DNA of 64,000 bases from assembly GCA_021613535.1 (NCBI GenBank), contig CP075493.1, forward strand, positions 17,856,001 through 17,920,000. Reading direction: 5' to 3'. The DNA is from Adineta vaga. Its lineage: Eukaryota > Animalia > Rotifera. Under the pieces are notes generated by a model, which saw only the letters and a list, made by a program, of their open reading frames with translations, was not told the origin of the DNA and did not search any database. Shown in pieces: positions 13,846 through 48,570 of the stretch. Made by a program: the position numbers and the translations under genes. Within the stretch, counting starts at the first letter, position 1; every line of letters begins with the position of its first letter.

Positions 13846-14602
13846 TCGAGTATTAAACTTTTAAATTCGAGTATTCGAGTATTAAACTTCTTCGAGTATT
13901 AAATTTATTCTTCGAGCATTAAACTTCTTCTTCGAGTATTAAATTTATTCTTCGAGTATTAAACTTATAAATCTATAACTCGAAGATTCGAGTTTTCGAG
14001 CTTTAAACTATTAAACTTATAAATTTATAAGTCGAAGATTCGAGTATTCGAGTTTTCGACTTTTAAACTTGTAGAGGGTGAGGGTGTGGGGTGCTATTAG
14101 TGAGGGGACTCTGTGTGATGGTGCTCTCAGTGAGGGTGTGGGGGTACTCGGTGTGAGGGTGTTCTTAGTGAGGGGACTCTGTGTGAGGGTGCTCCTGGTG
14201 AGGGTGTGCGGGTACTCTGTGTTAGGATGCTGTTAGGGTGAGGGTGGGAGTGGCGCATGAGCGTGCTTTGACTAGGGGTGAGAGTAGTACTCAGCGCGGG
14301 GGAAAGGGAGGATCCTTTGGGTGTGGGTGCGGCATGAGAGGAGCGGGTGCAGCGTAATATGATAGTTTAGCAGGAAGGGCGATTTTAGAGCGCAACGTAA
14401 AAAGGGGTACTCCCAGTTGCTACAGTTTTCAAGCTCCAAACTCGAATACTCGAATCTTCGACTTATAAATTTATAAGTTTAATAGTTTAAAACTCGAAAA
14501 CTCGAAGCTTCGAGTTATAGATTTATAAGTTTAATACTCGAAAACTCGAATACTCGAATTGTAGATTGATAAGTTTAATACTCGAAGAAGAAGTTTAATA
14601 CT
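13846..14602. repeat. Foldback element with modular inverted arms and a G-rich core
   Basis: Left arm made of TTCGAGTATTAAACTT modules (13846-~14070), inverted right arm (~14440-14602), core of GTGAGGG/TGTGGG-type repeats at 14071-14330. Confidence 0.65.
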
Positions 14603-16699
14603 TGGATCGAGTTAACGATTTCTACACTACTCTTAAAAAAACACTTAACGAAAGATTTTCATCAGATAATCATAAAGAAAGAATATATTACTAGTTCTTT
14701 TATAGAATAGAACATTTCGACGAGACAGCAATTATGCATATAAAAAATATAGCAAATACCTTCGATAGGCTATTTAATTGATTTACTTTCCAACCAATAA
14801 GACTATCCAACGTATCATAATATTTCATCTAAGAGATATCATGATATTTCGTTGATAAGTACAATCAATAAACAGATAACTACTTAATGTCAGTGAGCTC
14901 GGTGTGACTGAAATCTTCAGTGCACCGAGAGGATCAGTGCATCACTGATATACTGAATCAAGGTACGGTGTTTCAGTGCTGTCGGTGTGCGCTGCCGTCA
15001 CCGCCGGTGTTCGTCGGTGCTCAGTTAGTCAACACCGCACATCCCTATCACCAACTTTAAAATCGCTTTCGAGTCAAAACATTGTTTAATAAATGTAATT
15101 GACCATGCTGATTCAGAATATCACGGTCTCTACGGCTAATTCTATCACAAAGATCCGGTTCTCTAAAAACCGGGGCTCTGGAAAATCAACTTTTTTTCCA
15201 CATGTTGTTTTTTATAATCCCAGGTTATAGAGCATATCAAATTATGTATGTATCAACATGTATTTCTTTCTTGGAAGAGTGGACTCTAAGAAAAAAAAAA
15301 ACTTTTGTACTTTTATACGAAAATCCTTTGGCATGCATCCCTTATACGAAGTTGGACGACTGTATGTCTTAGGAAAAATCGATACGAAATAGAAACAACT
15401 CTTGTTTTAGAGACAACTCGATATGCTCTATAACCTGAGATTATAAAAAACAACATTTCGAAAAAAAGTTGGTGTTCCAAAGCCACAGTTTTTAGAGAAT
15501 CGGATCTTTGTGATAGCATTAGCCGTAGAGATCATGTTATTCGGAATCAACATGGTCGATTACCTTTAGTGGACTGTTTTGAATCGAAGGCGATTTAAAA
15601 GTTGGTGACCTCCTCTCGTCAGTATTGAATTGCGAACAAAATAGACTTTACTTTTTCAAAAACTCAACCTTAATTTTTTTCGAAAATTTCTCGGGGTGAA
15701 AAGGTCAAAAAATGAGTTTTACTGGATCCTTATAAAAACCATAGCATTTTATTCATGATTCGATGCTGAGGATCATTGTATAGTTTTTGTGAAGTTTCTT
15801 TCTTTACCTAGCCTGGAATATGATTTTGTGGCAAAAAGGTGAAATTCTCCGACGGACAATACTATCTATCTCTTATTCGACCAACCTAAGCTTACTAAAA
15901 GTAACCTGATATTCTAAAAGCTTGTATAGAGCTGTGTAACCTCTATATACAATATTTTTATCCATATTGTTTTGTTTCGCAGTGAAGCGCCAAACTCTCA
16001 GGTTCCCCTGAAAAAAAAAGAACTACCTGAGGTGTTCTATAACGGGTGATATTCTTTTCAATAACCGCTTTCCGTAGAAAAATATTAATAAAATTTATAC
16101 CGATATTAGAACGAATTAGTCTCTATATACATTACAAATTTCAGGAAGTTTGCATTTATCGATGAGGAGATACGGGTCCTACAATTCGACAAAATGAAAC
16201 TCTGTAACGCTTGCTATACGTTATATGCATCAGTATCTTCACAATAGCTTCCCAATATTAATAGGTACACTGAAAAAAATATCCGCATAGTAATCTACCC
16301 TTGCCCTTAATAACTTTGTCAATCAACCTTTTAAGCGTTTATTTCAAAGTTATCAATCCTTTTAGGGTTGAATACTCCAAGGGTTGAGCACGGGATAAGT
16401 TTATCAAAGTTGAAAGGGTATATGAAAGTTGCTTAAGAGTTTCTTATCAAGATAAGAGTACTTTGTATAACCTATATGAGTAGATTATTGTACGCGTACA
16501 AAAAAAGGATATTTCATTATTCGATTCTGGATTGATTATATTACTTTCGATTTAAATGGGTATGTCACTCTACTTTTCTGAAAATAGCACAGTATTTCTT
16601 GGATAACTCGACTATTATTCTACGCCCATGGGTAGATTATACTATGATTTCTTTCGAAAGGTTTAGTACAGTACGTATAAGGGTTGATTCATCTACTTT

Positions 16700-17360
16700 T
16701 CAATCTAAAAGGTTTATTATTGTACGGAAAGAGTTTTGCTTTATACAAATTGTCATCAAAGATTTATTATTATCCAGTGAAAAACTAATTTATGTATTTC
16801 TTCAGGATTGCAATACATTTCATTTAGTCTCATGATTGTTAGAATGTCTTTTATATGTTGGCTGAAGTTTATTATTCTACATACAAATATTGATTCTTCT
16901 ACTTCTTCATATAAAAAGGTTTATTACTCTACCTAAATTGATTTAGCATTCTACATCTTATTATATAAGTATTTATCATTCAACTGTAATTGATTTAGCA
17001 TTTAGTTCTTTGTAGGAAACGGTTCATTAGTGTACATGAATTGATTAAGTATACACATCCTTTGTGCAAATGCAAAAGAGTATATTACTCTACCTGATTT
17101 GGTTTAGAATTACACATATTGCTATGAAAGGATTTATCATTCCACCATAATTGATTAATCATTCAAAATCTTGGTATGAACAGGTTTATCACTCTACCAT
17201 GATTGGTTTAATGTTCTACTTATTTATATAAAAGGGTATATTACTCTACTTGATTTGGTTTAGTATTCTGCGTATTCTTATAAAACGGCTCATTACTCTA
17301 CACATATAGGTTGATTGTAATATACTTTCTCCGAGAAGCCTTTTATTACTCTATCTCTAC
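16700..17360. repeat. Degenerate ~52-bp-period 5' subterminal array of CACTA copy 1
   Basis: GGTTTAT(T/C)A(C/T)TCTAC-like motifs recur about 52 nt apart (e.g. ~17131, ~17183, ~17235), with TTGATT/TTGGTT half-sites between them. Confidence 0.6.
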
Positions 17361-18076
17361 ACATAGATTATTTTATATATTTTTTAAAAGTAGGTTGATA
17401 TTCAGAATTCAACTCTATTCTTTTCCAGTCTATATTTCAAACGTGAATGGGAAGTAATTATCAATACATGTACATCAAAACAGAAGAAATGTAAAATGAA
17501 TTTTTATTATTGTTTAGAGAACATCTTTGATTAAGAATAATATGAAATACATAAGAAGCTTTTTGTTAGGGCATCTTTTATAATGATTGAAATATTTTGA
17601 GCCGCTATCACCATCTATCAAATTGTTTTACTATTAGATGAATTATAAATAGTAACTATAGACAATTGAATACAATACATCTTTCAGTGGCTTTGTTGTG
17701 TATAGAATTGTTTATCCCTTTGTATTCTAACAACTATATCGTCCGTCGATACATACAGAAGTTTTATTTTCAGAATTTCAAATAATACTTATATAATTCT
17801 CAAATGATGAATTGGTCTTGTGAACAAGTGATTCGTTGGTGTAGAACTTTTATCGATCATGATTCGATTATATCTCGGATTGAAGGTCAGTTTATTTTTA
17901 TTTATTAGAAAAATGCATGATATTATCATTTGTTGACGCTGGTTCTATGTATTTAATTTTAATTTAATCTTTCGTATTTTACATTAGAAATAGATATCTA
18001 ATAGAATATAACTGCGATAGTGTTTATATTTTTTCGATCTGATCTTTCTTTTAATTCTTTTTCTTTTCACTAAAGT

Positions 18077-18145
18077 AGAAGCGCGCATCTATATAATATA
18101 GTAGATTTAAATAGTTCGTGGCTTTTGTTCATTGGTTAGTATTAG
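18077..18145 (+). promoter_or_regulatory. Putative internal promoter of the transposase (GCGCGC box + reverse CCAAT box)
   Basis: AGAAGCGCGC and ATTGGTTARTATTAG are conserved at the equivalent place in copy 2 (~47411-47485, - strand) within otherwise diverged intron sequence. Confidence 0.4.
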
Positions 18146-21100
18146 TTATCAACTGTTTATTTTATCCTTATTATTATATAAATAATCGTAAACTAGAATA
18201 TCAAATAGAAACCGATAAATCAATTCATTTCGTAATTGATATTTTATGTCATCATACATATGTCCGCTTTGCTTGACGGATCGAAAGTTCGCCAGCTTTG
18301 CTAAAATGTTCAAACACATTACACTTTATCATCAAAATGAACCGAATTTCCAAATAGTATGTGATTTACATAACGCATGTGGTGTTCGCTACCGCACTTA
18401 TGCTGCTTATAAGTCACATATATATCGAAAGCATTTAATTGAATTACATTCTACAGAAAAATCCAATAACAATATATTTTCAACTAATGATCAACAAAAG
18501 CAAAATATGAATTTTTATATGGAAAACGATTCATTGAATACTGACGACAATGATGCATTATATTTTAATGATGATCCAGAAACAGTAGCATCAAATGATT
18601 ATATATCTCAGTATACATCATCATTTTATTCAAGTAATAATAGTGAAGAAACAATAGTTTCTATTAAAGATATCAAAAAATCGTTTGTTTCATTTATTCT
18701 ACAATTACGTGAAGAATTTTTATTACCAAAAAATGTTACGAATATTATTGCTACATATATTACTACATTATTATATCATATTGAAATTTTATCTGGTAAA
18801 GAAGCATTTGATTATCATGTGCATAGTCATTCATTTACATCATCATCTTTTCAACATCAAAACACCAAAGTAGTTCAATTTGATCAATTGATACATCTTT
18901 TGAACGATATACGCTACGCAGTTGAGTCCATAACAAAGAATGAATACCAATTTATCAAACACTGTAGTGAATATTCTGATTTTGAACCTGTTGATGAAAT
19001 TGTTGTATCAGCTCCTAATGAAACTTTTGATGCTGGATATTTTATTCCTATCGACAAAACGTTATCTTCAATGTTGAATTGTCAACCATTATCTTTTAAT
19101 ATACTTGAAAATATTCATCAACAACAGTTAGCAACTGAATTAGATGGTGATTTAATGTTCTCAATTAGAAATAGTTATCACGGTTTAAAATTAGATGATG
19201 ATCATTTATTACTTCAGTTATATATTGACGACATCGGATTAACTAACCCTTTGGGGTCAAAACGTGATCAACATAAGATGTCAATGATATATTTCACACT
19301 TGAAGACGTACCTGATCAATATAGATCAAGAATGGATTTCGTCCAGTTGGTTGCGATTTGTGAAAGTAGAATTTTGAAGGTATGAGCCTCATTAAAAACC
19401 CGATAATAAATAGTTTTGTTAATGAGAATTTTCTTTTGTTTTGAGCAAACATCAAATAAATTTTTCCTTCGAATAAATCGTACTAATTTACTTTCGTGAA
19501 AAAATGAAAATATTTGTTACTATTGTTTCATATAATACACTGAAAAAATGTAAACTTTACTATCCATCTTAAAAACAACGATACCATACTATGCTACATT
19601 TATTTTATTTGGATTTTTTGAGGACAATGTCAAAGCAAGACGATTCTTCGAACCAATCATCAAGAACTTGAACCACTTACAGCTGCACGGTCTTGTGATT
19701 AATGGTTTTCATTTTAAATTTACATTTTCCACTGTTGTAGCGGATAATTTGGCGGCTAACTGGTTAGGTGGGTTCCAATCGTGTTTTAACAATGGCTTTT
19801 TCTGTCGAAGATGCTATATTAATTATGCAGAGAAAAGCTTACCAATTACATTGCAACAGATTAAAAGTCGTTCAATTATTGATCATGATCAACTAGTTAA
19901 AGATATTTTAAATGATCCTAATCAATCTTCTCGGATGGGCGTTGTCGGTCAAAGTCCATTAAATGATCTTATTGGTTTTCATCCAACAACATCATTACCG
20001 GGAGATTGTATGCACGATTTTCTAGAAGGAGTATGCCCATTGGTGATAATGGCTCTCTTAAAACAAGCTTCAGCAATGCGTCTTATAACCTATGGTAGGA
20101 AGTAATTTTTTATTTCGGAATATTGTATAAACGTCTATCGAAATATCTAGTCTAGATTCTGTTGTAATTCAATTTAAATTGATTAATTTTAATCATCTTA
20201 ATTTTTATCTAAACAAATTATTTTATGAGAGAGAGAAAAGAGTAAATAATCGATTGAGATAACATTATCAAATTTGAATCAATTTGAATTATTTTCTATA
20301 ATTAGTTCTAATATCTTTATAATTTTTATTGAGAAATATATCAAGAATTCTTGATATAATGCATTTGGTATTTTTTTTTCATTTTCTTTCCGATTTCATA
20401 AGCTTGTACAATAAGGAACAGTTGCTCTAATAGGTATACGAATTTCTGTTGTGGTGAAAAATTTTTTTAAGACTACATTTTTCTTTTCCACATGATCATA
20501 CTTTTTTCTTCTATAAAATTACCGACTTAACTGAGCAAAATAATTTCTTGTTAAATTCTTCAAAATTGATTTACCTTGAGTATCTTCGAGCAGATTATGT
20601 TGAAACATTTTCATCTATAACTGATTAGAATTGATTCACTTTTGAATAATGATATATTTTCATATTAAAAGAAGTACAATAAATTACATCCTGATATTCG
20701 TTTAACAATAAATATCGCCTATCGCAACATATTATATGTTTTCTTTCATCTTTAAAGCTCGTATTCAAGAACGTATGGACAATTTTCAATATGGCTATTT
20801 TGATACCAGTAATCGACCACCACCTATTCAAGTGAAACATTTACAAGCTGAACGTGTTGTTGCGACGGCTTGTCAAAAGTTGTGCCTTTTCAGGCTTTTC
20901 CCGATTATTTTCCATGACTTAATCGATCACTTGCAATCTTTTATGGTTTACAAAATTCTTCGTGAAATACTAGATCTCGTTTTATCATGTCCGTTCAGAA
21001 AAAGTTGGTTGCCTGTTCTTAGTGATTTATGTTTAGCATTTCACGAGAATATGTTACTACATTTTCCCAACAAGATTTCACCCAAAGCTCACTTCGTTCG

Positions 21101-21313
21101 AGAATACGAACGAATCATTCATGATTATGGTCCAGCTACACGACAATGGTGTTTACGATATGAATCTCATCATGCTTATTTCAAAAATATTTCAACCAGA
21201 ACAAATAATTTTAAAAATACTCCAAAAACACTTGCAACTCATTTTCGACTGAAACAGTGTTTAAAATTTATTCGTTTTTCAAAACTTCAAGATTGTTATT
21301 ATGCAATAGGAAT

Positions 21314-21482
21314 TGTCACGGCATTTTGCCGTGATATCTCATGAGTCAAGGCATTCCTTACTCATGTGTATATGATTCCTGAGTCATGTATACATGAGCA
21401 AGGATATATATACGCGCTTCGCTTATGCTTGAGGGTGTCTTCCCTATTGTATTCTCTTTGATCACAATACATACTCATCACA
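21314..21482 (+). repeat. 5' LTR
   Basis: Direct repeat of 27189-27357; differs only at ATGATTCC vs ATGACTCC. Confidence 0.97.
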
Positions 21483-21483
21483 A

Positions 21484-21498
21484 TGGTGCACTGGCCGG
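21484..21498 (+). other. Primer-binding site, probably tRNA-Gly
   Basis: TGGTGCACTGGCCGG lies 1 nt after the LTR and is near-complementary to the 3' end of eukaryotic tRNA-Gly(GCC) (TGGTGCATTGGCCGG, recalled). Confidence 0.65.
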
Positions 21499-21559
21499 TC
21501 TACTGTAACCACTGAACAGTAGATCCTCCACATCAAACAATATTGGTCTCCTCTACTAT

Positions 21560-22738
21560 ATGATCCAAGAAGAAATACGTCAAGCTCGAGAACGTGCTGC
21601 CAAACAAGCTGATCAACGTGACCAACGCTCCGAAGCCCGCAACCAAACAATATCACGTTCTACTTCAACTACTTCCAAACCAACAAAAAATCTTTCAGTA
21701 TCTTCTGAACTTCAAACTCCACCACAACATATTGTATCTCCAACTCCTGTCCCTGCTGCTATTGAATCAACTATCGATATTTCAAATAATAATCTCCAAT
21801 TAGAATCCATCAACTGTGGTACAGAATCGCTTCTCTCTCATAACACTACTCAAAACCACAACGAAATTATAAATATTAAGCCACCTGTCGAAGTCAAACA
21901 CGAATCACTAGATTCTCCTATGGATTCCCATCAATCCAAAGCCATAATTGATAGTATTCCAACTTTTTCTGGAAATACACAAGAAAACGTTAACGAATGG
22001 TTAGAACTCGTCTCCCTCAAATTTGATATTCTTGGATATGATCAAGCACAGAGACGTCGTTTTATACCACAATACTTGACTGGAAATGCTGTTAAGTGGC
22101 ATCTAGCTCATCGTGACGGTCTTGCCAATTGGAATGAATATACAACAGCACTCACTGCTGCATTTCCTCAGACAAATGTCACCTCACGTGATATGAACCT
22201 GCAAAACCTATGTAACCGCAAACAACAACAAACAGAACCATTTGTTGACTACTACGCTTCTATGCTTGAACTTTGTCGTCAACATGATCCAGACATGGCA
22301 GATGTCCAAATTGTGGACTGGTTAAAAGCTGGTATGAAGAACTTTCTATATGAACGTCTTCAAGGTGAAGATTTTACCACACCTCAACTTCTCTTGGCTC
22401 GTGCTCAACGTCTCGAATTGGATCACGCTGTTCTTCAAGCTCGTAGAAATGGTTATGATTCTTCCTCATTTACTACTCCCAACAATACAACATCTGAACC
22501 AATGTATTCTACTTGGCATGACAATCCATCATCATATCAATCTTTTCCCAATCAATCTGTCATGCCATCGTACCCATCACCATTAATGTCTACTCCTGTT
22601 CCGTACCACACAAACACATTTACATCTCGTACAACATCATCACCTCGTTCGCGTTCATCACGCCGTCCTATTATATGCTACACCTGCAATCAACCTGGTC
22701 ATATCTCTCCGCAATGCCCATTACGCCCAAAATACTAA
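21560..22738 (+). CDS. gag: Gag (capsid domain + one CCHC zinc knuckle)
   Basis: IPTFSGNTQENVNEWL, LTGNAVKW, RKQQQTEPFVDY motifs; C-terminal CYTCNQPGHISPQC (CX2CX4HX4C). Confidence 0.93.
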   Translation: MIQEEIRQARERAAKQADQRDQRSEARNQTISRSTSTTSKPTKNLSVSSELQTPPQHIVSPTPVPAAIESTIDISNNNLQLESINCGTESLLSHNTTQNHNEIINIKPPVEVKHESLDSPMDSHQSKAIIDSIPTFSGNTQENVNEWLELVSLKFDILGYDQAQRRRFIPQYLTGNAVKWHLAHRDGLANWNEYTTALTAAFPQTNVTSRDMNLQNLCNRKQQQTEPFVDYYASMLELCRQHDPDMADVQIVDWLKAGMKNFLYERLQGEDFTTPQLLLARAQRLELDHAVLQARRNGYDSSSFTTPNNTTSEPMYSTWHDNPSSYQSFPNQSVMPSYPSPLMSTPVPYHTNTFTSRTTSSPRSRSSRRPIICYTCNQPGHISPQCPLRPKY

Positions 22739-25700
22739 AGGGAGCCCGAGATGGTCGTGCCTCCCTCACCTCAATCAATCCATCACTCATCGTCGTTTCT
22801 ACATACATTAATGGTAATATTATTCCCGCAATGATTGATACAGGTGCTACTCATACATTAATAACCTATTCGCTTTTCAAATCTATTTCTTCTGCTCGTA
22901 TTGAAAAATCCTTCGCTACTACTGCTATGCTTGGTGATGCATCCACTACTATCAAAGTTTACGGTTCGGTTCCCCTATGCATATATATTAATCACATACC
23001 TACACATGTTTCAGCATTTGTTGTCGATTCCTTAGGTGTTGATCTTATTCTAGGACTCGATTGGTGTCGTACATATGATGTCACAATCCGTGTTCGTCAA
23101 CAACAACTTCTCCTGCACCATCCACAATTTGGCTATACAACCGTCTCATTTCAAGATCAATTTTCAATTCCTGTTCGTCTTAAACAATCGATTCAACTTG
23201 CTCCTCACCATGAACATATTGTAACCTTAGTTACACCTTTATCATCTGCTCGTCAAGTAATTTACACTCCCGAATCAAACTTTTGCAAACAAAAGAATAT
23301 TTTTATTCCAGAAGCAATTTTAAATATTAACTCTTTTGAAACTTCTATTGTCATTTCTAATCTTGTCAAAACACCATGTACATTGCGCAAAAATACAATC
23401 ATTGGATTTATTAATTTCTTTCCTAGTCTATCTACTTCAACCAAAATTAGCGATCTTTCTTCTTCTCAAACTACAGCCTCCCTTATCAGTCTCTCTTCCG
23501 TCATAACTAGCCTTCCTTCAGGTCGATTCAGTCATTCAAAACTTAGTTTCCTCTATATCTGATCCAACTGAACGAAATATTTTTTCCACCATTCTTCAAC
23601 GGTATCGTCGAGTATTTGATACATCTCAACATACGATTGCAAAAACCAAACTTCCTCACGTCATCATTACAGGGGATCATTCACCAATTAGCGTTCGTCC
23701 TTACTATCGCAATATTCAACAGCGTAAAGAACTTCAACAAGAAGTTGACAAACTCATCCTCGATAATATTGTCCGACCGTCCACTTCTCCTTGGTCCTCT
23801 CCAGCTTTATTGAAAAAGAAACCAGATGGTACTTTCCGTTTTCTCGTTGATTTCCGTCGACTCAATAAAATTACGAAGAAAGACGCATATCCTCAACCCT
23901 CAGCCGAAGAATTAATTTATCGTCTTTCAGGACATAGCTACTTCACTAAACTTGATTTAAAAAGTGGTTATTTCCAGATTCCTATTGCAGAAGCGGATAA
24001 AGAGAAAACAGCATTCGTAACACCTGATGGACATTATGAATTTAATGTTCTCCCTCAAGGTCTTACGAATGCTCCTGCTAGCTTTCAGCGTGTGATGAAC
24101 AATCTTCTTGCTACTGGTCGTTGGGATTATGTCGTTATCTATCTTGATGACATTGTAGTTTTTTCTCATTCATTGGAGGAACACGAGCGGCACGTCGATG
24201 AAGTCTTATCTATTTTGAACAATGCTCACTTCAAAGTTTCTCCATCTAAATGTACCATCGCCGCAAGAAAAATTGAGTTTCTTGGCCACGTAGTCACTTC
24301 AGCTACAGTTGAACCTTCACCTGATAAATTACAAGCCATTCTAGATATTCCACCACCACGCACATTATCACAAGCTAATCGTTTCCTTGGCAAAATTGGC
24401 TACTACCGTAAATTTATAGATGATTTTGCAAATATCGCCGCTCCACTTCATAAAGTCACCAACAAGACTCGAACCAAAAGGATGAGTTTTACTGGCATGC
24501 AGAACAACAGGCTGCGTTTGAAAAATTCAAGAAAATTCTCACTAGTGCTCCACTCTTTCTTCACTTTCCAGATTCTTCTCTTCCTTTTATTTTATCTACT
24601 GATGCTAGTCTTACACGTATTGCTGGTATACTCAAACAAAATACTCCTAGTGGTATGAAGATTTGCTACTATAAGTCTCGACTGCTGTCAGACACCGAAA
24701 CTAGATATTCGGCTACTGAACGCGAAGCACTTGCAATTTGCTGGTGTTTGGAACAACTTCGATCATGTATCGGCACTTCACCAATCACAATAGAAACTGA
24801 CCATGAACCTCTCTCAAAAATCGATAAAAATTTCACTATCCGCAATAAAAGAATCGATTATTGGTTTCTAAAACTACAGGATATTCTACCGCAAATTACT
24901 GCAATTAAATATCGCCGAGGAGTTGATAATGTTGGTCCTGACTTTCTTACTCGATATGAACCACTCCAAGATGAATCGTCCTTGTCACTATCAACTCCTT
25001 CTGTGGCTCTTCCACCACGAACCCTACCGTCACCAGCAATTGACAATAACTGGCCCGCCGGTACTGAAAATTGGGACCAGATTGTTATCTCTCCTGTCGT
25101 AACTCGATCAAAAGCTCGAGCCATTTCTAATTCGAGTTGTAACACTTCTTCTACTACCACAAATGAGGATGATGGTGATACTCTTATTTCAACTGATCTA
25201 ACTTCACCTCAAAATCTTAGTCTACCACATATTCGCCAAGAGCAACATTCTGATCCTGAGATCTTTAGTATCACAGAACGCCTACGACAGAACCCTTCTG
25301 ATTCACTATTTATCTTAAAAGATGACATGGTCTATCGCGTTCTCTCACCTGGAAAACATTCTAATCCTTCTACTGCTATATATCTTCCAAAATCTCTCCT
25401 TTCTCTTGTTCTTCATTTATATCATGATCACCCATTAAGCGGTCATTTTGGTGTTCATCGTACACTATCTCGAATTCGCGGAAAATACTGGTGGCCTAAA
25501 ATGCACGCATCTGTTCGAAATTATATTGCCTCCTGCTCCCAATGCATACAACACAATATATCTCGAATTAAACCTCCGGGTCATCTAAAATCAATCACTC
25601 CTCCATCGAGTGTTTTTCAAATCCTACACATGGACTTTTGGGGTCCCGTCCGTACACCTTCCGCTAATGGTAATCGATATGTGCTAGTCCTTACGGACAA

Positions 25701-26451
25701 TTTATCTAAATATGTGATAGCTGAAGCTCTACCCGACTGCACTGCTAAAACAGTCGCTCAAGTCCTGATCGATCGATTTATCCTTATTCATGGAGCTCCA
25801 GAACGAATCATCACCGATAACGGCACTCACTTCAATAACCACCTACTGCGTAGCATCACAAACTCCATGAACATACCTCATGCATTCTCCGCTGCGTATC
25901 ATCCGCAAACGAACGGCCAAGTCGAGAGATTCAACGCAACTTTCGCTACCCAACTGGCCAAATATTGTGATGCGGATAAAACAGACTGGGACAAATTTCT
26001 TCCATCGGTTGTATACGCTTACAATACCAGTGTCCATTCCACAACTTAATTAACCTCATACGAACTTGCTTTTGCGCGTCACCCAAAAAGTCCTTTCGAT
26101 CCTATTTCTCCTACCATCACATTACCCCCTTTCCACTCTTTTTATACATACCTAACACAAGCCCGACAACTTCTAACCAATACAGCGCGGACCAACATAT
26201 TACAACAACAGTCTCATTGGCAACAACGGTACAACAATCATCGGCTCAACATCTCCTACCACAATGGTGGCCTTGTTTATGTACATGTCAGTAATGGTCG
26301 TTCCAAACTCGATGCTCGCTATCGGGGTCCATGTACTGTTATTGACGTATCTGGTACCCAACACTATCTCGTACAGGATAATCATACCGGTGCACAAGAC
26401 TGGTGTCACGTTAATCAGCTATTACCTGTTATTAATCGTCATTCATCTTAG
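22675..26451 (+). pseudogene. pol: Pol (protease-RT-RNase H-integrase) with two frameshifts and one stop
   Basis: AMIDTGA protease; RT with LDLKSGYFQI, PQGL, YLDD; RNase H TDAS...EREALA...TDH; integrase HHCC (H..GHFG...C..C) and DFWGP/TDNG/GQVER. Lesions near 23520, near 24480, and TAA at 26047. Confidence 0.92.
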
Positions 26452-26740
26452 TGTTATTGATCTTCTCTTTTACTGTGAAACTTATTGGGATGTGGCAGCC
26501 CGTATTTATCACATAAATTATCATACTGTTTATTTCTGCACGTCATTATCCTTTCCTTTTCTTTCATCTCATTCTTACACCTACCATCATGCGAGTTGTG
26601 GCAGCTCGTATCATCATGGTTTACATGACTCATTCTCAATATACAACATTCTTGTCCATTCTGATTCCTTACATCATTGTTTATTTTTTATCATATATAT
26701 ACTCTCATTACTTGAGTATCTTATATACTTTCTTTTCATC

Positions 26741-27082
26741 ATGAAGTTTTTTCTTCTACTTTTCATTTTGATACAATTACATCTCCTCAATGGCTCATGG
26801 TTCTCACCAAAAGTTGCTTCTCCTACCTCAGATGTCCACGTCAATGTTGTTAACCATGTCGCCGATGTCGTGCATAATTATTCGAATCAATTTCAACCAA
26901 CATGGCGCGATTACTCCATTATCTTTCTTCTTATTGTGGTTATTGGATCTTGTCTCATCGGTTGCTGTTGTCTGGCCTTTGTGTGCTTATATCGTCGGCT
27001 GCTGTTCCAACTTCTTCATCGCACTCCTACTACAGCTCATCATTCTGATAAGCCTACCACTCTTGTCTACATGATTACATAA
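26741..27082 (+). CDS. ORF3: 113-aa env-position type I membrane protein
   Basis: The ATG at 26741 gives signal peptide MKFFLLLFILIQLHLLNG, a ~40-aa ectodomain with an NYS sequon, TM IIFLLIVVIGSCLIGCCCLAFVCLY, then RR. Lies between pol and the PPT. Confidence 0.7.
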   Translation: MKFFLLLFILIQLHLLNGSWFSPKVASPTSDVHVNVVNHVADVVHNYSNQFQPTWRDYSIIFLLIVVIGSCLIGCCCLAFVCLYRRLLFQLLHRTPTTAHHSDKPTTLVYMIT

Positions 27083-27188
27083 ATGCGCGTATTATGGCCA
27101 TCATTTATCTTTTTTCTTCTTTTCTCTCTTTTTCTGTTTTTCAACATTTTTTCGCTACCATGTGCTCTGCTTGTTTGAAGGGGGGAGG

Positions 27189-27357
27189 TGTCACGGCATT
27201 TTGCCGTGATATCTCATGAGTCAAGGCATTCCTTACTCATGTGTATATGACTCCTGAGTCATGTATACATGAGCAAGGATATATATACGCGCTTCGCTTA
27301 TGCTTGAGGGTGTCTTCCCTATTGTATTCTCTTTGATCACAATACATACTCATCACA
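27189..27357 (+). repeat. 3' LTR
   Basis: Preceded by the PPT, followed by TSD GGAAT. Confidence 0.97.
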
Positions 27358-30300
27358 GGAATTAAAAAGATTTATAGCGCATCATTTAATACGTTAATGA
27401 AAAATACTTTACTTGATCACTTTGATTTTATTGATTTTAACAACGATTTCTTCCAATGCGATAAGCTCATCAATGAAAATATTGAATACTGTCGATCAGC
27501 TGTATATGTTATCCAGTTAGATAGTGATAGTGAACAACCATTATTTGCCCAAATAATTTTTATTTTAAAAATCAATGAAAAATGGTGGTTTTTAATGGAT
27601 GTACTTAACACTATATGCTATGACGAAAATTTATTTGCTTGGGAAGTGAAATCAGTTGATCGTTATATAATAATTGATCCATGCCAGTTGAAGTATTATT
27701 GTAAAGGACTAGATATTTACCATGTGAAGAACTCAAGTTTTATTTTATTCATTGGTCGTCTCACCTCGTATTAGTGAGAGTATACACTAGATAATGCTTC
27801 AAAACTCATATCTTGTTTTTATTTTATAGAACTTCACTCTTATAGTTTTATTAACTTTTGATTTTATTCGTTTTCTCGATTTTTTGATGTATTTGATTAT
27901 AACAGCAGAATAGATAGTTTTTATATTAAGAAAGTTATGTCTTTCGTAACGATTTTTTCTTTTAATAAGAGATTTTTCAATAAGAGTAGTTTTAAAAAGT
28001 GAACAAGTTTATTACCTATCGTATCATATGATTTTATCTAAGATATTTACTTTGAAACATTATATATATTTGATCGAGATAGCTATGTTATTTTTTTCAT
28101 GTTACTCTGAACTTTCCTATCTTTTTTATTCATAATATATTAAAAAGAGAAAATTACTTCATTCTTCTGATCTCGACAGCTATACTTTTAAAATAGAGAA
28201 AAGCATTTAAAAAAAGAATCATTTCATTGATACATAATAAATTTTATTCTTTTTAGAATTTGATATTGATGGTCGGACATTGGATATGATGAATACTGTC
28301 GAAAGAATTTCGACAGTCATACCAAAATTCAAATTGCAATTACTCTTTTTAGAAGAACGAGAAAAATTATTTAAACGAAATACTGATACTTTAACTGAAG
28401 GTGATGATTCATCATCAAACATTACAACCAATCCTCAAGCATCATTTATTTCTACTGATTCATCACCTGACTGTATACCAAAATCACTCATTCATAACTC
28501 GATATCTGTTCCATGTAATAATACTACGAATATTAATGCATCATTTCCTGATGAATATACTATTCCACAATTACCAGATGGTTTACTTAAAAATATTGAA
28601 AACGGTACTTTAAAAACATTTGGTCCACATTGTGCAAATCGTCAGATATTGATTGATGCAATTAGTTATGATTTGATCAACAAATACAAACCCTTGTAAG
28701 TTGAAAAAACGAATTGATTATGATAATGATGAGAAAAAGATGCACACATTATTCATTTTTTGATATATAAAAAAATTCTCCTGTATATTTCTTTCGAAAA
28801 TTTATTAGAAATATATAACTAGTACTTCCGCTATCGATAATAATTCCTTTTCCAATGTAGAGATATTCTTAATTTTCTCTTTTATTTCATTCACTACTAT
28901 CAAAATATATTAGTTGTGTTATAGATGGTATATATTCTAAAAACTACGTGAAAATAATTTCTCTTGAAGAGAAAATTCTTGAAGTTCACTCTAGTTCCTT
29001 TCATTCTTTTTTTTCCTTATTAGCTATCCAAAACCAGAATAATTTGATTCAATCGCTAAAGCAATCGTCAAATTCCTGAATTTGCCAAGAACAAAAGAAA
29101 ACATCGTAAGTTCATTTCAATAGTTTAAAATAAAATGTATTTTTTTCTTTACATAGATCATATGGAAGGATACATTACAAACAAAACTAAAACGTAAACG
29201 TACTGAACATTTAGATAATATTATCGTTCAAAACTATCGTTTAAAATATGCACGCTCAGGATCTGGACGTCCTGTAAAACGAAGACTTGATGAAACAGCA
29301 AAACGAGATCGATATACACAAGTAAGTTAAAGCTGAATACTTTATGTTACTTTATCTTTTTTTTCTAGATGATTATGTTGCCGCACAACGATGAAACATC
29401 TGATGATGTTCAAGCAAAAGCAAATGAATTACGAAATTTATCTGAAGTTGATGTTCTTACACAATTAAAATTATGGCAAGAAACAGTATATTTTCGTCGT
29501 CAATCTATCAACAATCAATCAACTCAAGATATAATAAATGATTTTCCTGGCTATTCAAATCCATTACTGGTAAATTAATATGCTTCTTATTAATTTATTT
29601 TACTTAAGAAGTTTATTTTTACAACAGATTTTTGAAGAGGTGAAAATGTTAACGAACACTGATTTACCTGCAGCAGTACGACGACAAGTACCTGAATTAA
29701 TTAATAAAATACCGTCAACATCATTTATTACAGGTAAATATATAAATTAATATATATTGATTGATAGTTATTTGATTTTAGAATCACCTGCTATTCGATT
29801 AATTAAAATATTGTGTAAAGAATTTCGTGAACCTATTCCACATCTATTTTGTGATGAGGTAATTTTTTTTCTATGATAACTAGAATACATCGTTGAGGTA
29901 TTTATATTAAAGAATTTCAATAGAAAAACATATGAGATTCATTTGAACTGATGCATATGTATATCAATAAATAGATATTTCATATAAAAAAGCACATAAA
30001 TAGGCTTGATTTTTTTTTAAAGTAAAAGCAATTTTAATTGGTATTTATTTTATCCAATCATGTTCTCTCTATGATTCATTTGTTCTTATATACTTATATT
30101 TGATTTTAATGATATATTTGACGGAAAATTTAAAAATCATTAATTTGTATAGCAACCATCTACACCATATCCAACATTATTTTATATTGATAACATTATT
30201 CATATTTATGTGGATTTTATTTCAATTGTCTCAACAAATTCAATAGATGATGCTGTTGCACTTCTCATCGCTATGTATACAATTTTTGGTTTAACATTTG

Positions 30301-30493
30301 ATAAAAAAAGTCGTGCAGTTCGACTTCTTTATGCTGTATTACATGCTGAAACAAGATATTTAACTAATTCTGTTCGTATTTTGATGAAGGAAAAAGGTAT
30401 CGATGTTTATGCTGAACAGCAATATCAACCAAAGCAACATCAAACCATATCAAATTCATCTGCAAATATTTCAACAACACCTGCAATCGGGTC

Positions 30494-30533
30494 ACAAACA
30501 CAAACACAAACACAAACACAAACACAAACACAA
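30494..30533 (+). repeat. (ACACAA)n microsatellite encoding a TQ repeat
   Basis: About six tandem ACACAA units in the 30153-30673 exon; absent from copy 2. Confidence 0.85.
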
Positions 30534-32679
30534 TTACAATCACAAACCTCAATCAATTCGTCAAATGATTCTTCGATTCAGATCAATTCTCTTGCTGTGA
30601 ATCAATCAACTGAAAATAAATCATCCAATGAAAATCGTATTTCAAATGAAAATTTAAATTCTGATACAAATGAGTAAGTTCTATTTTCTAGATTGATCTA
30701 TAACATAATGTTTACAATCTTGTTTCGTGTAGAAGAAGTAACAGCATTGAAAAAACATCATCACTCAACCTCGATTCACAACAACAAACAAAACAACGAA
30801 AAAGACAAAGAAAAAATTTGACTTCTGTCGAAACAAATGATCATCAAATTGTATCTATTAATCCAATTCCATTTAATGATCTTACTAACTCGAATTTGAC
30901 TTCACGTCCAAAACGAACACGAAGAATTTAATCTATGTTTAAATTATTAACTAATTCAAATATTCCAGATTTTTTTTTATTTCGTTAAAAAATATTTTCA
31001 TTCAAGATGTGATATCTGATTGTCATTTCTTTTCTATTCATCTTTACCGTTCACTTTTTCTTTAATATACATCATAGTCAAATATACAAATATTAAACTG
31101 TTATAAATTAAGTTCTATTTTTCTTCATTAAATCTGACAAATACAAAAATTATTTCAATTAATTTACATCAATCTATAAAGCAAAAGCTGCATCTACTGT
31201 ATCTTTTTCTTTTTTTTCGTTCAATAAACAGAATTATCTTATTTAAACAAAATCATCCGTTCATAAATAATTTATTTAATCAATTTTTTCGTTTTTCTTG
31301 CTCGGCTGATTCAAGTTAATGTTTTAGTTTATCTTTTAAAAATTTCTTTAAAAAGATATCAATTTTTATTTCTTGTTTTCTTCAACCATCGACCCAATTT
31401 AATATACATCACTTCTGCAGCAATTGTGTACATCCTTGTAATTTACATAAGTACATCTAACTATTTATAATATATACAATTTAAATCCATCGAACGTTCA
31501 ATAATGAATGAATCTTTTAAATAACCTTTGTCTTTTTCGAACATTATCTCAATTCAACCAGAAGCATGCATTGTAATTAACATACGACATTATTTATTTC
31601 TTTTCTTAATCTCTTTATCGATTAATTATGACTTCGTTGAGCAGGATTCATCCTCTCATACACACTTTCACTTTAATTTCTTCGTCTTTTTTTCCTTCAA
31701 TCAGTTTCTCATTTTCATCGATAATCTTAGTTCACGAACATCAAATATTCTGTTTTTTTCGTCTATTCTTTTTTCCATAAGTTTATGAATTCAATTTTGC
31801 TGGTACGAGTTTTTTTCGTGGTGTTTGATGCACATACTCAATTTTTATTCATCGTATTGGAAGGATGAAGTTAATATGTAAGTATTGCTTATATATTTTA
31901 TTTAAAAAACATCTGTTTATATTTACAAAACGATACAATCAACATGTGAGTATTGTTGAAAACTATTTAATGTTTTATAAAATATTCACGATTAGATTTT
32001 AATTTAGATAAATATGCAAACGTCGTTCCAAAGGACAATCTATCTAATTAACATTTATAGAGTGTCGGTAAGTATATAAATAATATTTCAGAAATGTAGT
32101 TTGATTCTTACACATATTTAGATTCTTTTTCAACACATGGGTTTTGCTTTACTTTAAAAACAAATGAATTTAGAAGTAGCGGTGAACGGATTTTTTTTCT
32201 TGTGAATTCAAGTGCATAACAATTCCAAGTCAATTAGTGAGTGGTAATTCGAACAATCGATCATTTTATAGCATAATCAAGTTTCCTTCGAACCGAACTT
32301 ATCAAGTAAACGACATTCACTAAGCAGTTTTTCTCATATTTTCAGGTACATAACAACATCAGACCAACATACAACTATCCTGTAGTAACATTGATTATTC
32401 CCACATAGAATTAAGTTCATAACAACGACAAGTTAATGCGTAAGTGATATTTTGAAAGATTAATTATCCTCTAATACCTTTAGGTGTGCTTTGACTACAA
32501 ATTGTTTGGGCAAAAGCATTTAATTTAACTCTGCCTATATATGGAGGCTCTTTCAAAAATCAGGTGAACGTGAGAGTGATCGTTAATGAAATAAGATTGA
32601 ATAAAATCTTTTCTTTTCTATTTAGTTCCTAACGGTACATCGATTGTCATCTTCTTTTCCATTATTTTCCAATTGAAAC

Positions 32680-33525
32680 AACTAATCAACTGACTGAACA
32701 ACCTTCTGATATATCCTTTGTCAGTTGATACCACTGATCAACCGACTAAACAACCTTTTGATAAACCCTTTGTGAGTTGATGCAACTGATCAACCGACTA
32801 AACAACCCTCTGATATACCCTTCGTCAGTTGATGCAACTGATCAACCGACTGAACAACCTTCTGATAAACCCTTTGTAAGTTGATGCAACTGATCAACCG
32901 ACTGAACAACCTTCTGATAAACTCTTCTACAGTTGATATCACTGATCAACTGATTGGAAAACCTTCTGATAAGCCCTTTGTGAGTTGATGCAACTGATCA
33001 ACCGACTAAACAACCTTCTGATATATCCTTTGTCAGTTGATACCACTGATCAACCGACTAAACAACCTTTTGATAAACCCTTTGTGAGTTGATGCAACTG
33101 ATCAACCGACTAAACAACCCTCTGATATACCCTTCGTCAGTTGATGCAACTGATCAACCGACTGAACAACCTTCTGATAAACCCTTTGTAAGTTGATGCA
33201 ACTGATCAACCGACTGAACAACCTTCTGATAAACTCTTCTACAGTTGATATCACTGATCAACTGATTGGAAAACCTTCTGATAAGCCCTTTGTGAGTTGA
33301 TGCAACTGATCAACCGACTAAACAACCTTCTGATATACCCTTCGTCAGTTGATGCAACTGATCAACCGATTGAACAACCTTCTGATAAACTCTTCTACAG
33401 TTGATATCACTCATCAACCGACTGAACAACCTTTTGATATACCCTTTGTCAGTTGATGCAAGTGATCAACCGACTGAACAATCTTTTGATAAACCCTTTG
33501 TCGGTTGATATCACTGATCAACTGA
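32680..33525. repeat. 52-bp tandem array (~16 units), 3' subterminal region of CACTA copy 1
   Basis: Unit GTTGATGCAACTGATCAACCGACTGAACAACCTTCTGATAAACCCTTTGTAA (starts at 32828, 32880...); a 312-bp (6-unit) higher-order duplication at 32701 / 33013. Confidence 0.95.
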
Positions 33526-33888
33526 GTGAGAGTGGCATACCTTTTCACCATTGTTCACTCTGATATACGTTTTGATAAACGTTTTCTTGAGGATATTATG
33601 ACTTGATCAACTGTTTTTTTCTGTTACTTTTATGGGTAGATTAGTGGGTTTATCACATTCTGATAAATGGTAACAAAGGGTATATTATTCGTTGCACTCT
33701 GATCAACCTTTAAAAGGTTTATCATTCTTCGGATTTTTTTTTCAGTGTATGGAGATCGAATCTTACCATTTAACAGCCCCTCTGATTAACTATACGACTA
33801 CGCATTTGAGAAACCCTGAAGCTGCAGGTTATCTGAGCCATATTTAGGCTACTTGATATCGAAATATACCTTTTTTTCGCATTTTGAG

Positions 33889-36261: not shown

Positions 36262-37059
36262 TGTCGTGCCCTAATTGGGTAATGAAAAAAGAAAAAAACG
36301 CACCCTATCCTGCCCTATAGAGTACCCTGTATATTTGACTTAATATTAGACTTTTCTAATGAATCGAGTTCCAAAACAACACTGGTTCTAGATTATATTA
36401 TAAAACGTTGTTTTAATCAAACTAAATTATAATAGCATAGTCCAACAACTAATGTAATAAAGAAAATAATAGATCTTCAATAAAGATCACTTTTTACTTT
36501 AGTTTAGAACGATCTTTGACAATAGCACAAGAAAATACACAGAAAAAACCTCACTAACAAAAAAAGCAACACAACAAGACAATTTTTTTTTATGCATGTG
36601 TCTTCCTATATATTGAATTATTAACATTTTATCAAGTTTATATGCTTATAGATTTCACTGAAAAAAAAAAGAGTAGAGTGATAAACCTTTAAAACGTTTA
36701 TCAGAGTGCAACGGATAATATACCCTTTTCTACCATTTATCAAAGTCTATTAAACCCTTCTATCTACTCCTAAAAAAAGGTTTAGAGAAAGGTTTATCAA
36801 CTTAAAACACTCTTTGGAATACGGTTTATCAAAACGTTGATCTGATTAAAAAACGCAAAAAGGGTATGTTATTCGTTGCATTCCTATAAACCCTTTGACA
36901 AGGTATTTCAAAATTATATATCCGCTAATACTATTACATGTAGTCGTTTATAATTTGGTATATCATAAAATGATACCCTATTATTTGGTTTAGTACAGCT
37001 AACATAAAGGGTAGATTCGCCTTATTAACTGCAGAAGAGTTGGGCAGGACGTAGTTCAA

Positions 37060-37500
37060 GTGATTGATCAGTTCCATAAACTTGGAAAGGGTTCTTCATA
37101 TGGTACTGCAGATGGTTGATCAGTTCCATGAATCAAGGAAGGGTTCTTCATATGGTACTGCAGATGGTTGATCAATTCCATAAACTTGGAAAGGGTTCTT
37201 CAAATGGTACTGCAGACCGTTGATCAGTTCCATGAACCTAGAAAGGGTTCTTCAAACGGTACTGCAGACCGTTGATCAATCGCATGAACTTGGAAAGGGT
37301 TCTTCAAATGGTACTGCAGATGGTTGATCAGTTCCATGAATCAAGGAAGGGTTCTTCATATGGTAGTGTAGATGGTTGATCAGTTCCATAAACCTGGAAA
37401 AGGTTCTTCAAATGGTACTGCAGATGGTTGATCAATTCCATAAACTTGGAAAGAGTTCTTCAGATGATACTGCATATGGTTGATCAGTTGCATGAACTTA
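37060..37500. repeat. 52-bp tandem array (~8 units), 3' subterminal region of CACTA copy 2
   Basis: Unit GATGGTTGATCAGTTCCATAAACTTGGAAAGGGTTCTTCAAATGGTACTGCA; its reverse complement aligns without gaps to the copy-1 unit (39/52 by manual count). Confidence 0.93.
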
Positions 37501-40500
37501 GGAAGGATTCGTCCAATGACAGTTTGAAGAGATTATCAATTTTATGAAATAATAAGGGTTTTTAAAAAGGTAATTCAGACACTGAAGCACGCTTAATGCT
37601 TTATGTAATTGTTAAAAGTATTGATGCAGTCGTGGAATTCATCTCAAGAAGGAAATAAAATGAAGGAAAGCGTGAAGTGGACTTTAGAAGGTGGACAGTC
37701 AAAAGAGATATATTGAGTTTCTACTGAACCCATAGAAAGTTGAAATGAAAACTATCAACATATGTAGTAAAGAGAAACCATACGCAGGAAGAATAGCATA
37801 TAAGTCTGGCTGTTATGAGTAAGGTCTAACTGTTGGCACTAGGTTGAACTGAAGACAAATATTCTATATACTATTCGAAACACCTACTCTGGAAACTATA
37901 AAATAGGTAACTATGTCATTAGTTAACGATATAATCGCAGGAACTCACATAGAATTTTTGAATATTAGAAAGCTAGTTATGGAAATAGTTAGAGAAACAG
38001 ATTAAAAATCGATTGCGATATCACTTTTATTATTTTAATTTAATCAGATCTTTTCGCTCGGAAAAAGACTTCATGTAAGTTAATTTTTTTCTATGCATTC
38101 TAATCGATTATTAGAAAAATCCCCGTTGCTTATGATTTTCAGCTTTTCTCCTAACTTTTTACACAGATAGTTAAGTAAAATATATGATTATATAATTAGC
38201 AACAGTTTTCTTATTCTGAATTCATATCTGAAAATAAGACATGAATAAATGACTAAATTTCAAAAAATGTTATTAAATCGCTTACCTCGGATTCACTTTT
38301 GTACCACTTTAGAACTGCATGCCGAAAAAGGATATTGTGGAAGATTTATTCAATAATTCATCTTGCGTTACTTGTCGAATGAGATCTAAATAAAAAAAAT
38401 ATGATATATAAATTCATCGTTACTTGATACAATACCCTTTGATTTATATTTCACTTGTATATATAAAAAAAATTTAAAAAAAGATTTTGTTATTGTTCAA
38501 TCGCTTATCTTTAGTATGCATTTGAATCGAGTCTAAATATAACTAATTCATCTACTATTGATCTGTCGTTGACAATATCTAAAGAAAGAAATGAAAACAT
38601 TTTTAATTGTTATGAAATTATTTACCTTTGATTTGGTCCAATGTGAAATCTAAAATAAACCTAAAATAAGTTATATAGTCAATGGTGTATCAGTTGTATT
38701 TTATTGTTTCTCGAATGATACCTAGAAAGCAAACGAAAATATCTGTTCAATATTACAAAATAACGTATCTTACATTCGTCGTTAAATTCAATCCACATAA
38801 AGAAAATAATAATATGTCATTTTGTTGAATTAGAACCTAAATAAAGAAAGCAAATAAGATCATCAATTAATGTATCAATAAATTATTTACTTTTTGTTTA
38901 CTTTAAAATCAGATCTAAATCGAAAGAAAAAGTATTGTTTTATTAAAATTAAATAACTTACCTTTGATTAATAGTTGAAGCAAAAAAGACCATGGAGTCA
39001 ATGTAAAGTTTGATTATTGTGAATTGAAGTATATTTGAATTGTTTTTGAATGACGTCGAAAGGAAAAGAGAAAACTGGAAATAGAAAAGATAGAAAAAAA
39101 ACATCAGATATTAAACATTAGATACTCCAAATAAAATTATAAAACTGATTGAACAAAAAAGAAGTAAATCAGTCTTCTGAGTAACGAAAAATGCACTGAA
39201 ATTTTTAATAATAAATAAAACATTACGATATTGATATTAATTACGTAGTATATTGTTGTGAGAACTAAACAATTAACTGAATCGGTAATTGAAAAAAAGT
39301 GTTGAAAACATAGATGAACATCTTGCTGCATATATCGATGAAAGAAATAAAAAGATTAACTTAGTGATTAAAGTGAACAAAAATGGATGAAGCATTTATC
39401 GAAATGTAGTTTTTTAATAAACGATCTTACTTGAAAAGATGACGTATCGAATCAAAAGGCAATAAGAAAAATTTTTGTTTGAAACATCTTCGTTGATCGT
39501 TAAAATGATTGTCATATGTTAAATTTTATAAGAAAAAAAGTTATACTTTATTTATAATGAATTTAGATATAATTAAGTTGAATCATGTTTTTTGTTAAAG
39601 AAAAAATAATCGATAGAGATGAAGAAAGAGAAAATAGACAAGAAATTCTAGATGATTTATATAAATATTAAACTACCTATATATTATAATCTTCGTTTTC
39701 GTTTTGGTCTTGAATTAAAATTTGAATTCGTAAGATCATTTAATGGAATGGAATTCGTAGTTGTAATTTGATCATCAGCTGTTTCAACCATATTTGAACC
39801 TGTAGAATTTTGATGATCCGAAAATGAATTCTTTTTTTGTCGTTTACGTTGTTTCACATGTGGTTGTGATTTTGAATGTAATGATGATGTGTTTTCCATA
39901 TTGTTACTATTTCTATATGAAATAATATTGTCAATATTGCGAAATAAATATATCAGAATACTATATCTTACTCATTTGTATCAAGATTATCATTTGTTGA
40001 TGTTGTTTCGATTAATTGATTTATCATAAGACCATTATCTTGAACTGGAAGATCACCAGGTGAATGTAATTCAATTTGTGTATGTGATTGAGATTCATTT
40101 TCAGATGTTGCTGAAGAATTTGATAACGAATTTGACATTGCTTGTTGTTGTTGTCGTTGGTATTGTTGCTCAGCATAAATATCGATATTCTTTTCTTTAA
40201 TTAATATTCGAACAGAATTTGTTAAATATCTTGTTTCAGCATGTAATATTGCATAAAGAAGTCGAATAGTTCGGCTTTTTTTATCAAATGCCAACTCAAA
40301 TACTGAATACATAGCAACTAGAAGTGCAACAGCATCATCTGGTGAATCGGTTGATACAATAGAATTGAAATCCACATAAATATGAATGATATCATTAATA
40401 CAAACTAATGTAGGATATGGTGTTGGTGGTTCCTAAATAAATTTTAGTTTTTAAAACCTTCAAAATGAAAAAAAAAGCCTATGAACACATTCTATAACGT

Positions 40501-48339: not shown

Positions 48340-48570
48340 AGTTAATAAACTCTTTGCAATGAGAAAGTACAAGAATAAACTGTTCAGCGAAGAATGATAT
48401 ATCTTTTACAATGATAAAGTGCAAGAGTAAACTGTTCAACGAAGAATGATAAACCCTTTGCAATGAGAAAGTACAAGAATAAACTGCTCAGCGAAGAATG
48501 ATAAACCCTCTGCAATTGAAAAGTACAAGAATAAACTTCTCAACGAAGAATGATAAACCCTCTGGAACGC
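48340..48570. repeat. 52-bp tandem array (~4.5 units), 5' subterminal region of CACTA copy 2
   Basis: Unit GAATAAACTGTTCAGCGAAGAATGATAAACCCTTTGCAATGAGAAAGTACAA. Confidence 0.85.

Follow-up and report, generated by a model that had tools for sequence, protein, structure and literature searches.

The upstream exon of the maize transposon En/Spm is non-coding. The transposase open reading frames (ORFs) of that element lie inside a long intron between the upstream exon and the body of the accessory gene, and its products come from alternatively spliced RNAs of one transcription unit (PMC1636069). SmTRC1, a CACTA element of the animal Schistosoma mansoni, is likewise expressed as alternatively spliced transcripts, of which an abundant short one lacks the transposase domain and has been proposed as the source of a TnpA analogue (DeMarco et al. 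2006, PMC1636069). Here we describe a CACTA-like element of the bdelloid rotifer Adineta vaga, present as two copies in a 64-kb window of contig CP075493.1 (positions 17,856,001 to 17,920,000; all coordinates below are counted within this window unless another source is named), in which an accessory gene appears to be laid out around the transposase gene. Our data suggest, with a probability that we put at about 0.72, that the accessory mRNA is made by splicing a small coding exon (exon 1) to the first downstream accessory exon (exon 2) across the transposase, yielding a protein with an N-terminal sterile alpha motif (SAM) domain.

Self-comparison of the window, which is AT-rich eukaryotic DNA, revealed two copies of a single large element, about 70% identical and arranged tail to tail with 2.9 kb between them. 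Copy 1 (16268-33747, forward strand) is bounded by terminal inverted repeats beginning CACTG at 16268-16302 and 33713-33747 and is flanked by a 2-bp TA/TA duplication; copy 2 (36656-49063, reverse strand) also has CACTG termini and is flanked by a 2-bp AA/AA duplication. All four ends read CACTG followed by a run of A, consistent with the CACT[A/G] termini of CACTA/EnSpm (CMC) transposons. Tandem arrays with a 52-bp period, corresponding to the subterminal repeats of CACTA elements, lie inside both ends of each copy: at 16897-17301 (5') and 32679-33529 (3', 16.4 units) in copy 1, forward strand, and at 48345-48613 (5') and 37064-37518 (3') in copy 2, reverse strand. The motif ATAAACCYTT is found at 15 sites against 0.6 expected, every one of them within these four subterminal regions. 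The order of the two genes, transposase and accessory (ORF2), is En/Spm-like in both copies as read from sequence alone. Target duplications are 3 bp in plant CACTA elements (PMC4158355) and 2 bp in animal CACTA-like elements (PMC1636069); the 2 bp seen at both rotifer insertions differ from the plant pattern, evidence that is thin because there are only two insertions.

We therefore use the label "CACTA-like" because of the termini, subterminal repeats and gene layout, and transposase homology forms no part of its basis. The features point to a large cut-and-paste DNA transposon of bdelloid rotifers, and all named homologues are from the bdelloid genera Adineta, Rotaria and Didymodactylos. 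A preceding sequence-only reading of this DNA had called both elements CACTA copies; the CACTG termini, subterminal repeats and two-gene layout bear this out, whereas the 2-bp target duplication and the absence of a Pfam Transposase_21 match do not.

The putative splice joins two short, phase-matched features in each copy. In copy 1, exon 1 occupies 17804-17885 on the forward strand, running from its ATG to a phase-1 donor (AAG|GTCAGT) and comprising 27 codons plus one nucleotide; in copy 2 it occupies 47718-47796 on the reverse strand, with 26 codons plus one nucleotide and the same donor in the same phase. Exon 2 opens at a phase-1 acceptor about 0.5 kb past the transposase stop in both copies (0.1-0.5 kb across elements): ttttag|AA at 28257 in copy 1, followed by the residues E-F-D-I-D-G, and tttag|AA at 43257 in copy 2, followed by E-Y-D-V-D-G. 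The copy 1 exon (28257-28695, forward strand) keeps an open frame to 28695 and would supply the C-terminal half of SAM, a linker and the start of a conserved core, while that of copy 2 (42133-43257, reverse strand) is broken by a foldback insertion. These exon boundaries, phases and peptides had been proposed in the sequence-only reading for both copies, and each was reproduced here. Every exon 2 examined starts in phase 1, including those on three contigs without the exon 1 stretch (L050-L052).

Exon 1 behaves as conserved coding sequence. It is the most conserved segment between the two copies, at 81% identity, compared with 51% in the 100 nt upstream of it, 52-69% in the intron and about 70% in the transposase coding sequence and exon 2. 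Between the copies, nonsynonymous divergence (dN) is 0.15 and synonymous divergence (dS) 0.72; over 21 pairs, the ratio of nonsynonymous to synonymous differences (pN/pS) is 0.22-0.77, with synonymous sites near saturation. These values argue that exon 1 is under purifying selection as coding sequence. In copies 1 and 2 the exon measures 79-82 nt and precedes the transposase ATG by 360-450 nt; across elements the corresponding ranges are 79-103 nt and 100-450 nt.

Exon 1 also recurs well beyond the window. In the A. vaga genome (a 100.8-Mb assembly of six contigs), it is present with the identical phase-1 donor at four further loci: one is a complete ORF that stands alone, lacking a transposase downstream, one precedes a transposase ORF1, one contains an internal TGA and one is degenerate. 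Outside this genome, five contigs (L010 from a Didymodactylos assembly, L011-L013 from environmental assemblies and L053 from a Joint Genome Institute, JGI, metagenome) carry an exon 1 of 79-103 nt with a phase-1 end, followed 2.9-4.2 kb downstream by an exon 2 that also starts in phase 1. In L010-L013 the space between the two exons holds transposase ORFs or gene calls, so that the full order of exon 1, transposase and exon 2 outside A. vaga was read in these four, L053 being read for exons 1 and 2 only. Conservation, selection and recurrence together rule out a chance origin of exon 1.

A T-rich, acceptor-like site (...ttttag) precedes the exon 1 ATG by 16-34 nt in 7 of 10 elements, at 17770-17775 in the window and near positions 5745 in L010, 5718 in L011, 3707 in L013 and 780 in L053; in copy 2 such a site is 79 nt upstream. 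"Exon 1" may therefore be an internal exon, and a non-coding leader exon, as in En/Spm, may precede it.

Exon 1 and exon 2 appear to encode complementary halves of one SAM domain, in the right order, a relationship supported by comparing each exon with SAM separately as its own profile. Exon 1 contains the pattern of the SAM N-terminal helix, W-[ST]-x-[ED]-x-V-x-x-W. Its Pfam match to SAM_Ste50p was the only one for copy 1 and the better of two for copy 2, although at E 0.01-0.02 (model positions 5-22) it fell below the gathering score. A seven-sequence exon 1 profile gave 13 matches at E < 10 among PDB sequences, 11 of them SAM domains matched at their N-termini; Ste50 (E 0.004) and STIM1 (E 0.017) were the best of these, and CNK2, neurabin and ETV6 were also present. 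For profile-profile comparison with hhalign, the SAM reference was built from 12 SAM_1 matches in the A. vaga genome itself, and 200 column shuffles were run per test. The exon 1 profile aligned to SAM columns 1-24 (probability 93.8%, E 1.7e-7, score 33.0; shuffle maximum 17.2) and the exon 2 profile to columns 28-63 (probability 56%, E 1.1e-4, score 22.9; shuffle maximum 20.0), with none of the 200 shuffles reaching the observed score in either test. The codon formed at the junction fills the gap between the columns covered by the two exons. The SAM-like domain that had been proposed to span exons 1 and 2 is thus supported by the two exon profiles, more strongly for its exon 1 half than for its exon 2 half; the further description of it as polymer-forming is unsupported, the best SAM matches being Ste50, STIM1 and CNK2. 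Since the halves are complementary and the donor phase equals the acceptor phase in every element examined, we take these data to speak strongly, if indirectly, for splicing of exon 1 to exon 2.

The transposase gene lies between exons 1 and 2 on the same strand in both copies, as expected from the sequence-only reading, and consists of three coding blocks. In copy 2 (43772-47267, reverse strand), these are 47267-46104, ~45916-45380 and ~44779-43772, with their own ATG and stop. In copy 1 (18246-21309, forward strand), they are 18246-19385, ~19614-20105 and ~20736-21309, the last of which is cut by the insertion of a long terminal repeat (LTR) retrotransposon; the C-terminal part resumes at 27359-27774 on the same strand and runs to its own stop (...GRLTSY*). 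The claim that a whole three-exon transposase with its own ATG and stop sits in the interval therefore holds for copy 2 and fails for copy 1, where the LTR element breaks the third block. An in-frame fusion of exon 1 to the transposase was also considered and is ruled out by stop codons that stand 2-19 codons before the ATG in the transposase frame of six of six elements, in line with the earlier failure to find an acceptor that would create one.

A fusion at the other end of the transposase has more precedent in public data. Rotifer annotations include models in which the last transposase exon is spliced in frame to exon 2 to give one long protein (P0052, 1352 aa; P0064, 1101 aa; P0010; P0056). 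However, the donors used by the fusion models are non-homologous (after YYHK, EVKDR and FTSQ), and each model removes the transposase tail (...GLDIYHVKNSSFVSFTGRLTFY-stop), which is conserved up to its own stop in five elements (copies 1 and 2, L011, L012 and L013). Such a product would also leave the SAM domain incomplete. Because the donor positions differ and the conserved tail is cut off, we regard these models as prediction artefacts, and a genuine transposase-accessory fusion seems to us highly improbable.

The affiliation of the transposase is less distinct than its position. Neither the window ORFs nor full-length homologues matched Transposase_21 (PF02992) at E <= 10, and the transposase matched nothing in Pfam even at E 10. 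Its language-model neighbours include clusters with Transposase_21, DUF4218 and Plavaka (scores 0.95-0.91), so a distant relationship to Transposase_21-type families is possible. The AlphaFold model of the transposase was poor (predicted local distance difference test, pLDDT, 48). In the Didymodactylos copy (L010 near position 7200; P0064 near residue 400), Asn is aligned with the putative second catalytic Asp found in other copies (A-D-N-L-A), and this copy may be inactive.

Several observations weigh against the exon 1-exon 2 splice. No joined protein was found by a phmmer search of exon 2 against 1.8 billion representatives or by word-index searches, and none of the four contigs recovered in a metagenome scan carries exon 1 joined to exon 2. 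Exon 2 alone gave no SAM match in Pfam or among PDB sequences, and its profile-profile probability reached only 56%. An intron of 3-10 kb would be very long for the A. vaga genome. Furthermore, position +3 of the exon 1 donor is a pyrimidine (C or T) in 10 of the 11 copies examined, so that the site appears weak, though a weak donor would also fit regulated use. A final point of this kind comes from conserved blocks between exon 1 and the transposase ATG, which are discussed below with the possibility of separate transcription.

The missing joined product could mean that exon 2 is translated without exon 1. The accessory protein might start at an internal Met of exon 2 (MLNNVERIS...), with the transposase regulated by exon 1 as a short upstream ORF or leader, whose likeness to SAM would be a relic. 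In keeping with this, the databases searched hold no exon 1-exon 2 product, and exon 1 is absent from all 12 roughly full-length NCBI models of the accessory protein (376-660 aa; Rotaria and Adineta): ten begin at a Met within exon 2, P0100 is N-terminally partial and P0098 is fused to the transposase C-terminus. However, more than 60 database ORFs match exon 2, and in these the homology begins exactly at E-x-D-x-DG, directly past the acceptor and before the first Met, while the sequence 5' of that point is unrelated intron read-through. The residues from the acceptor to the Met (E-x-D-x-DG-x-T-L) are conserved in all homologues, which argues that they are translated, and because the first Met of exon 2 comes after them, their translation must begin at an ATG elsewhere. 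Exon 2 thus appears to need an upstream coding exon. The purifying selection on exon 1, its precise match to SAM columns 1-24 (the very part that exon 2 lacks) and the agreement of donor and acceptor phases also argue against an internal-Met start, which we consider improbable.

Returning to the accessory gene, the matches retrieved with exon 2 are all either genomic ORFs with intron read-through or annotation models without exon 1. In the public annotations of Rotaria, Adineta and Didymodactylos (P0088-P0101, P0052 and P0064), the gene is given an internal-Met start or a transposase fusion, and exon 1 is included in none of them. We conclude that this accessory gene family is systematically mis-modelled in public rotifer annotations.

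If the splice is real, exon 1 would provide the ATG and SAM helices 1-2, and the next exon the rest of SAM; splicing between the two phase-1 sites would remove the entire transposase gene and give an accessory protein with a complete N-terminal SAM, so that the two halves of one folded domain would be coded on either side of a whole nested gene. An RNA that retains the interval could encode the transposase, but no intact SAM protein. Accessory protein and transposase would then be mutually exclusive products of any one RNA by construction, which would provide a simple control of product balance. The SAM module most likely mediates association between accessory-protein molecules. By analogy with En/Spm TnpA dimers, an accessory protein bound to the ATAAACCYTT subterminal repeats, if it binds DNA, would bring the ends of the element together. 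By its position, the accessory gene takes the place of En/Spm TnpA/ORF2.

Alternatively, the splice may be real and the transposase an independent nested gene. With its own internal promoter and poly(A) site, it would be expressed from separate transcripts, so that there would be no switch and at most interference between the two genes. Conserved blocks at 18085-18150 in copy 1 and 47480-47400 in copy 2, 130-200 nt upstream of the transposase ATG, could be such a promoter or a binding site: they include GAAGCGCGC, an ATTGG (reverse CCAAT) within ATTGGTTA and a TATA-like stretch (TATATAA in copy 1). Independent initiation would also avoid a difficulty that arises when the interval is retained in a transcript starting before exon 1, since the exon 1 ATG would then open an upstream ORF of 31-47 codons ahead of the transposase ATG. 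Furthermore, about 100 nt past the transposase stop are conserved at 69%. Against this, the promoter-like motifs are short, consist largely of A and T and show little conservation at loci C6 and C3b, and L010 has just 99 nt from the exon 1 donor to the transposase ATG, leaving little room for a promoter. In En/Spm and SmTRC1, moreover, all products derive from one transcription unit (PMC1636069). We hold separate transcription of the transposase to be a tentative possibility, one that falls short of even odds.

A stronger version of the spliced-gene reading would make the SAM-splitting exon an obligatory either/or device, in which each primary transcript gives either the transposase or an oligomerising accessory protein at a ratio set by use of the conserved weak donor, and would in addition derive the vertebrate and arthropod SAMD3 and SAMD3-like genes from a transposon accessory gene. 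This extended proposal is doubtful as it stands. The present result does offer an idea, open to testing, of where SAMD3-like proteins come from and what they do.

The accessory protein itself, about 600-650 aa long, is encoded beyond exon 2 by further ORF2 exons at 29000-30931 in copy 1 (forward strand) and 39684-41693 in copy 2 (reverse strand). A Pfam scan of its pieces returned no significant family apart from the matches of exon 1 to SAM_Ste50p, which lay below the gathering score. In an AlphaFold model computed from 17 sequences, residues 140-250 and 280-510 form a helical core predicted with confidence, and the linkers are disordered. Foldseek found no significant PDB match to this model, the best VIA Z was 4.7, and homeodomain-like and winged-helix-like rows for residues 164-242 were weak and within noise. 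The domain that follows SAM in the rotifer accessory protein is therefore one for which neither a Pfam family nor a solved structure was matched here.

Among named clusters, those of SAMD3 and SAMD3-like proteins come closest to the accessory protein, both in language-model features (score 0.90) and in the shape of an Atlas model (template modelling, TM, score 0.41/0.45). Our own AlphaFold model also had a SAMD3-like cluster as its top Atlas row, at TM 0.33/0.42 over 233 residues at 3.3 Å; TM values below 0.5 are a lead only and not proof of homology. The SAMD3-like character suggested for the accessory protein in the sequence-only reading is thus upheld at the strength of a lead. A sequence profile search for SAMD3 with 10 accessory proteins returned the query alone, apparently because it was swamped by low-complexity words. 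Vertebrate SAMD3 and SAMD3-like proteins share the arrangement predicted for the accessory protein, in which a helical core of about 350 aa comes after an N-terminal SAM. SAMD3 itself is a gene of the host and is not known from any transposon.

Both copies have been damaged by later insertions, and the damage is reciprocal: copy 1 has a broken transposase and open accessory exons, while copy 2 has open transposase blocks and a broken exon 2. Within the 10.4-kb "intron" of copy 1 lies a Gypsy-like LTR retrotransposon (~21310-27358, forward strand; 6.05 kb) with ORFs for gag, protease, reverse transcriptase and integrase. Its 174-nt LTRs share 98% identity, the target site is duplicated over 5 bp (GGAAT), and the insertion appears recent. 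Because the element splits the third block of the transposase, copy 1 has no intact transposase; the copy 1 accessory exons contain no stop codons within the matched coding segments. In copy 2, exon 2 contains a 627-bp foldback element resembling a miniature inverted-repeat transposable element (MITE) at 42496-43122 (no strand assigned), whose 295-nt arms show 98% complementarity and enclose a loop of 37 nt. Related foldback sequence is also present at G000:C2 ~16123985-16124442. In principle, either copy could make good the defect of the other.

Other repeats surround the pair. A non-LTR retrotransposon with two long ORFs (endonuclease and reverse transcriptase) lies at 49517-52953, separated from the 5' end of copy 2 by about 450 nt. 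Upstream of copy 1, dense nested inverted repeats of up to 178 nt and 84-96% complementarity at 13850-14600 and 15048-15608 are probably further foldback or MITE elements.

Compared with maize En/Spm, the rotifer element combines a familiar plan with several differences. Both appear to be cut-and-paste elements with CACT[A/G] termini, subterminal repeats and a transposase plus a smaller accessory product, with the transposase placed in an intron of the accessory gene. The rotifer upstream exon, in contrast to that of En/Spm, carries an ATG and half of a folded domain. The rotifer target duplication is 2 bp rather than the 3 bp of En/Spm, its transposase lacks a Pfam Transposase_21 match, and its accessory protein is SAMD3-like and unrelated in sequence to TnpA; its splicing is predicted from genomic sequence. 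The En/Spm-type layout would thereby extend to a bdelloid-rotifer element with a transposase too diverged for Pfam.

SmTRC1 resembles the rotifer element in being an animal element with 2-bp target duplications, but differs from it in having CCC... termini and a Transposase_21 domain that can be recognised. The short SmTRC1 products show no similarity to other proteins that could be detected, and no SAM domain or split-domain exon has been reported for it. The suggestion that the rotifer arrangement had not been described in animals must therefore be narrowed: alternatively spliced short transcripts were already known from SmTRC1 (PMC1636069), while our literature search turned up neither a SAM domain split by a coding upstream exon nor a SAMD3-like accessory protein. 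The alternatively spliced two-gene strategy thus has precedents in the CACTA elements En/Spm and SmTRC1, whereas the coding upstream exon that would split a SAM domain and the SAMD3-like accessory protein appear to be new.

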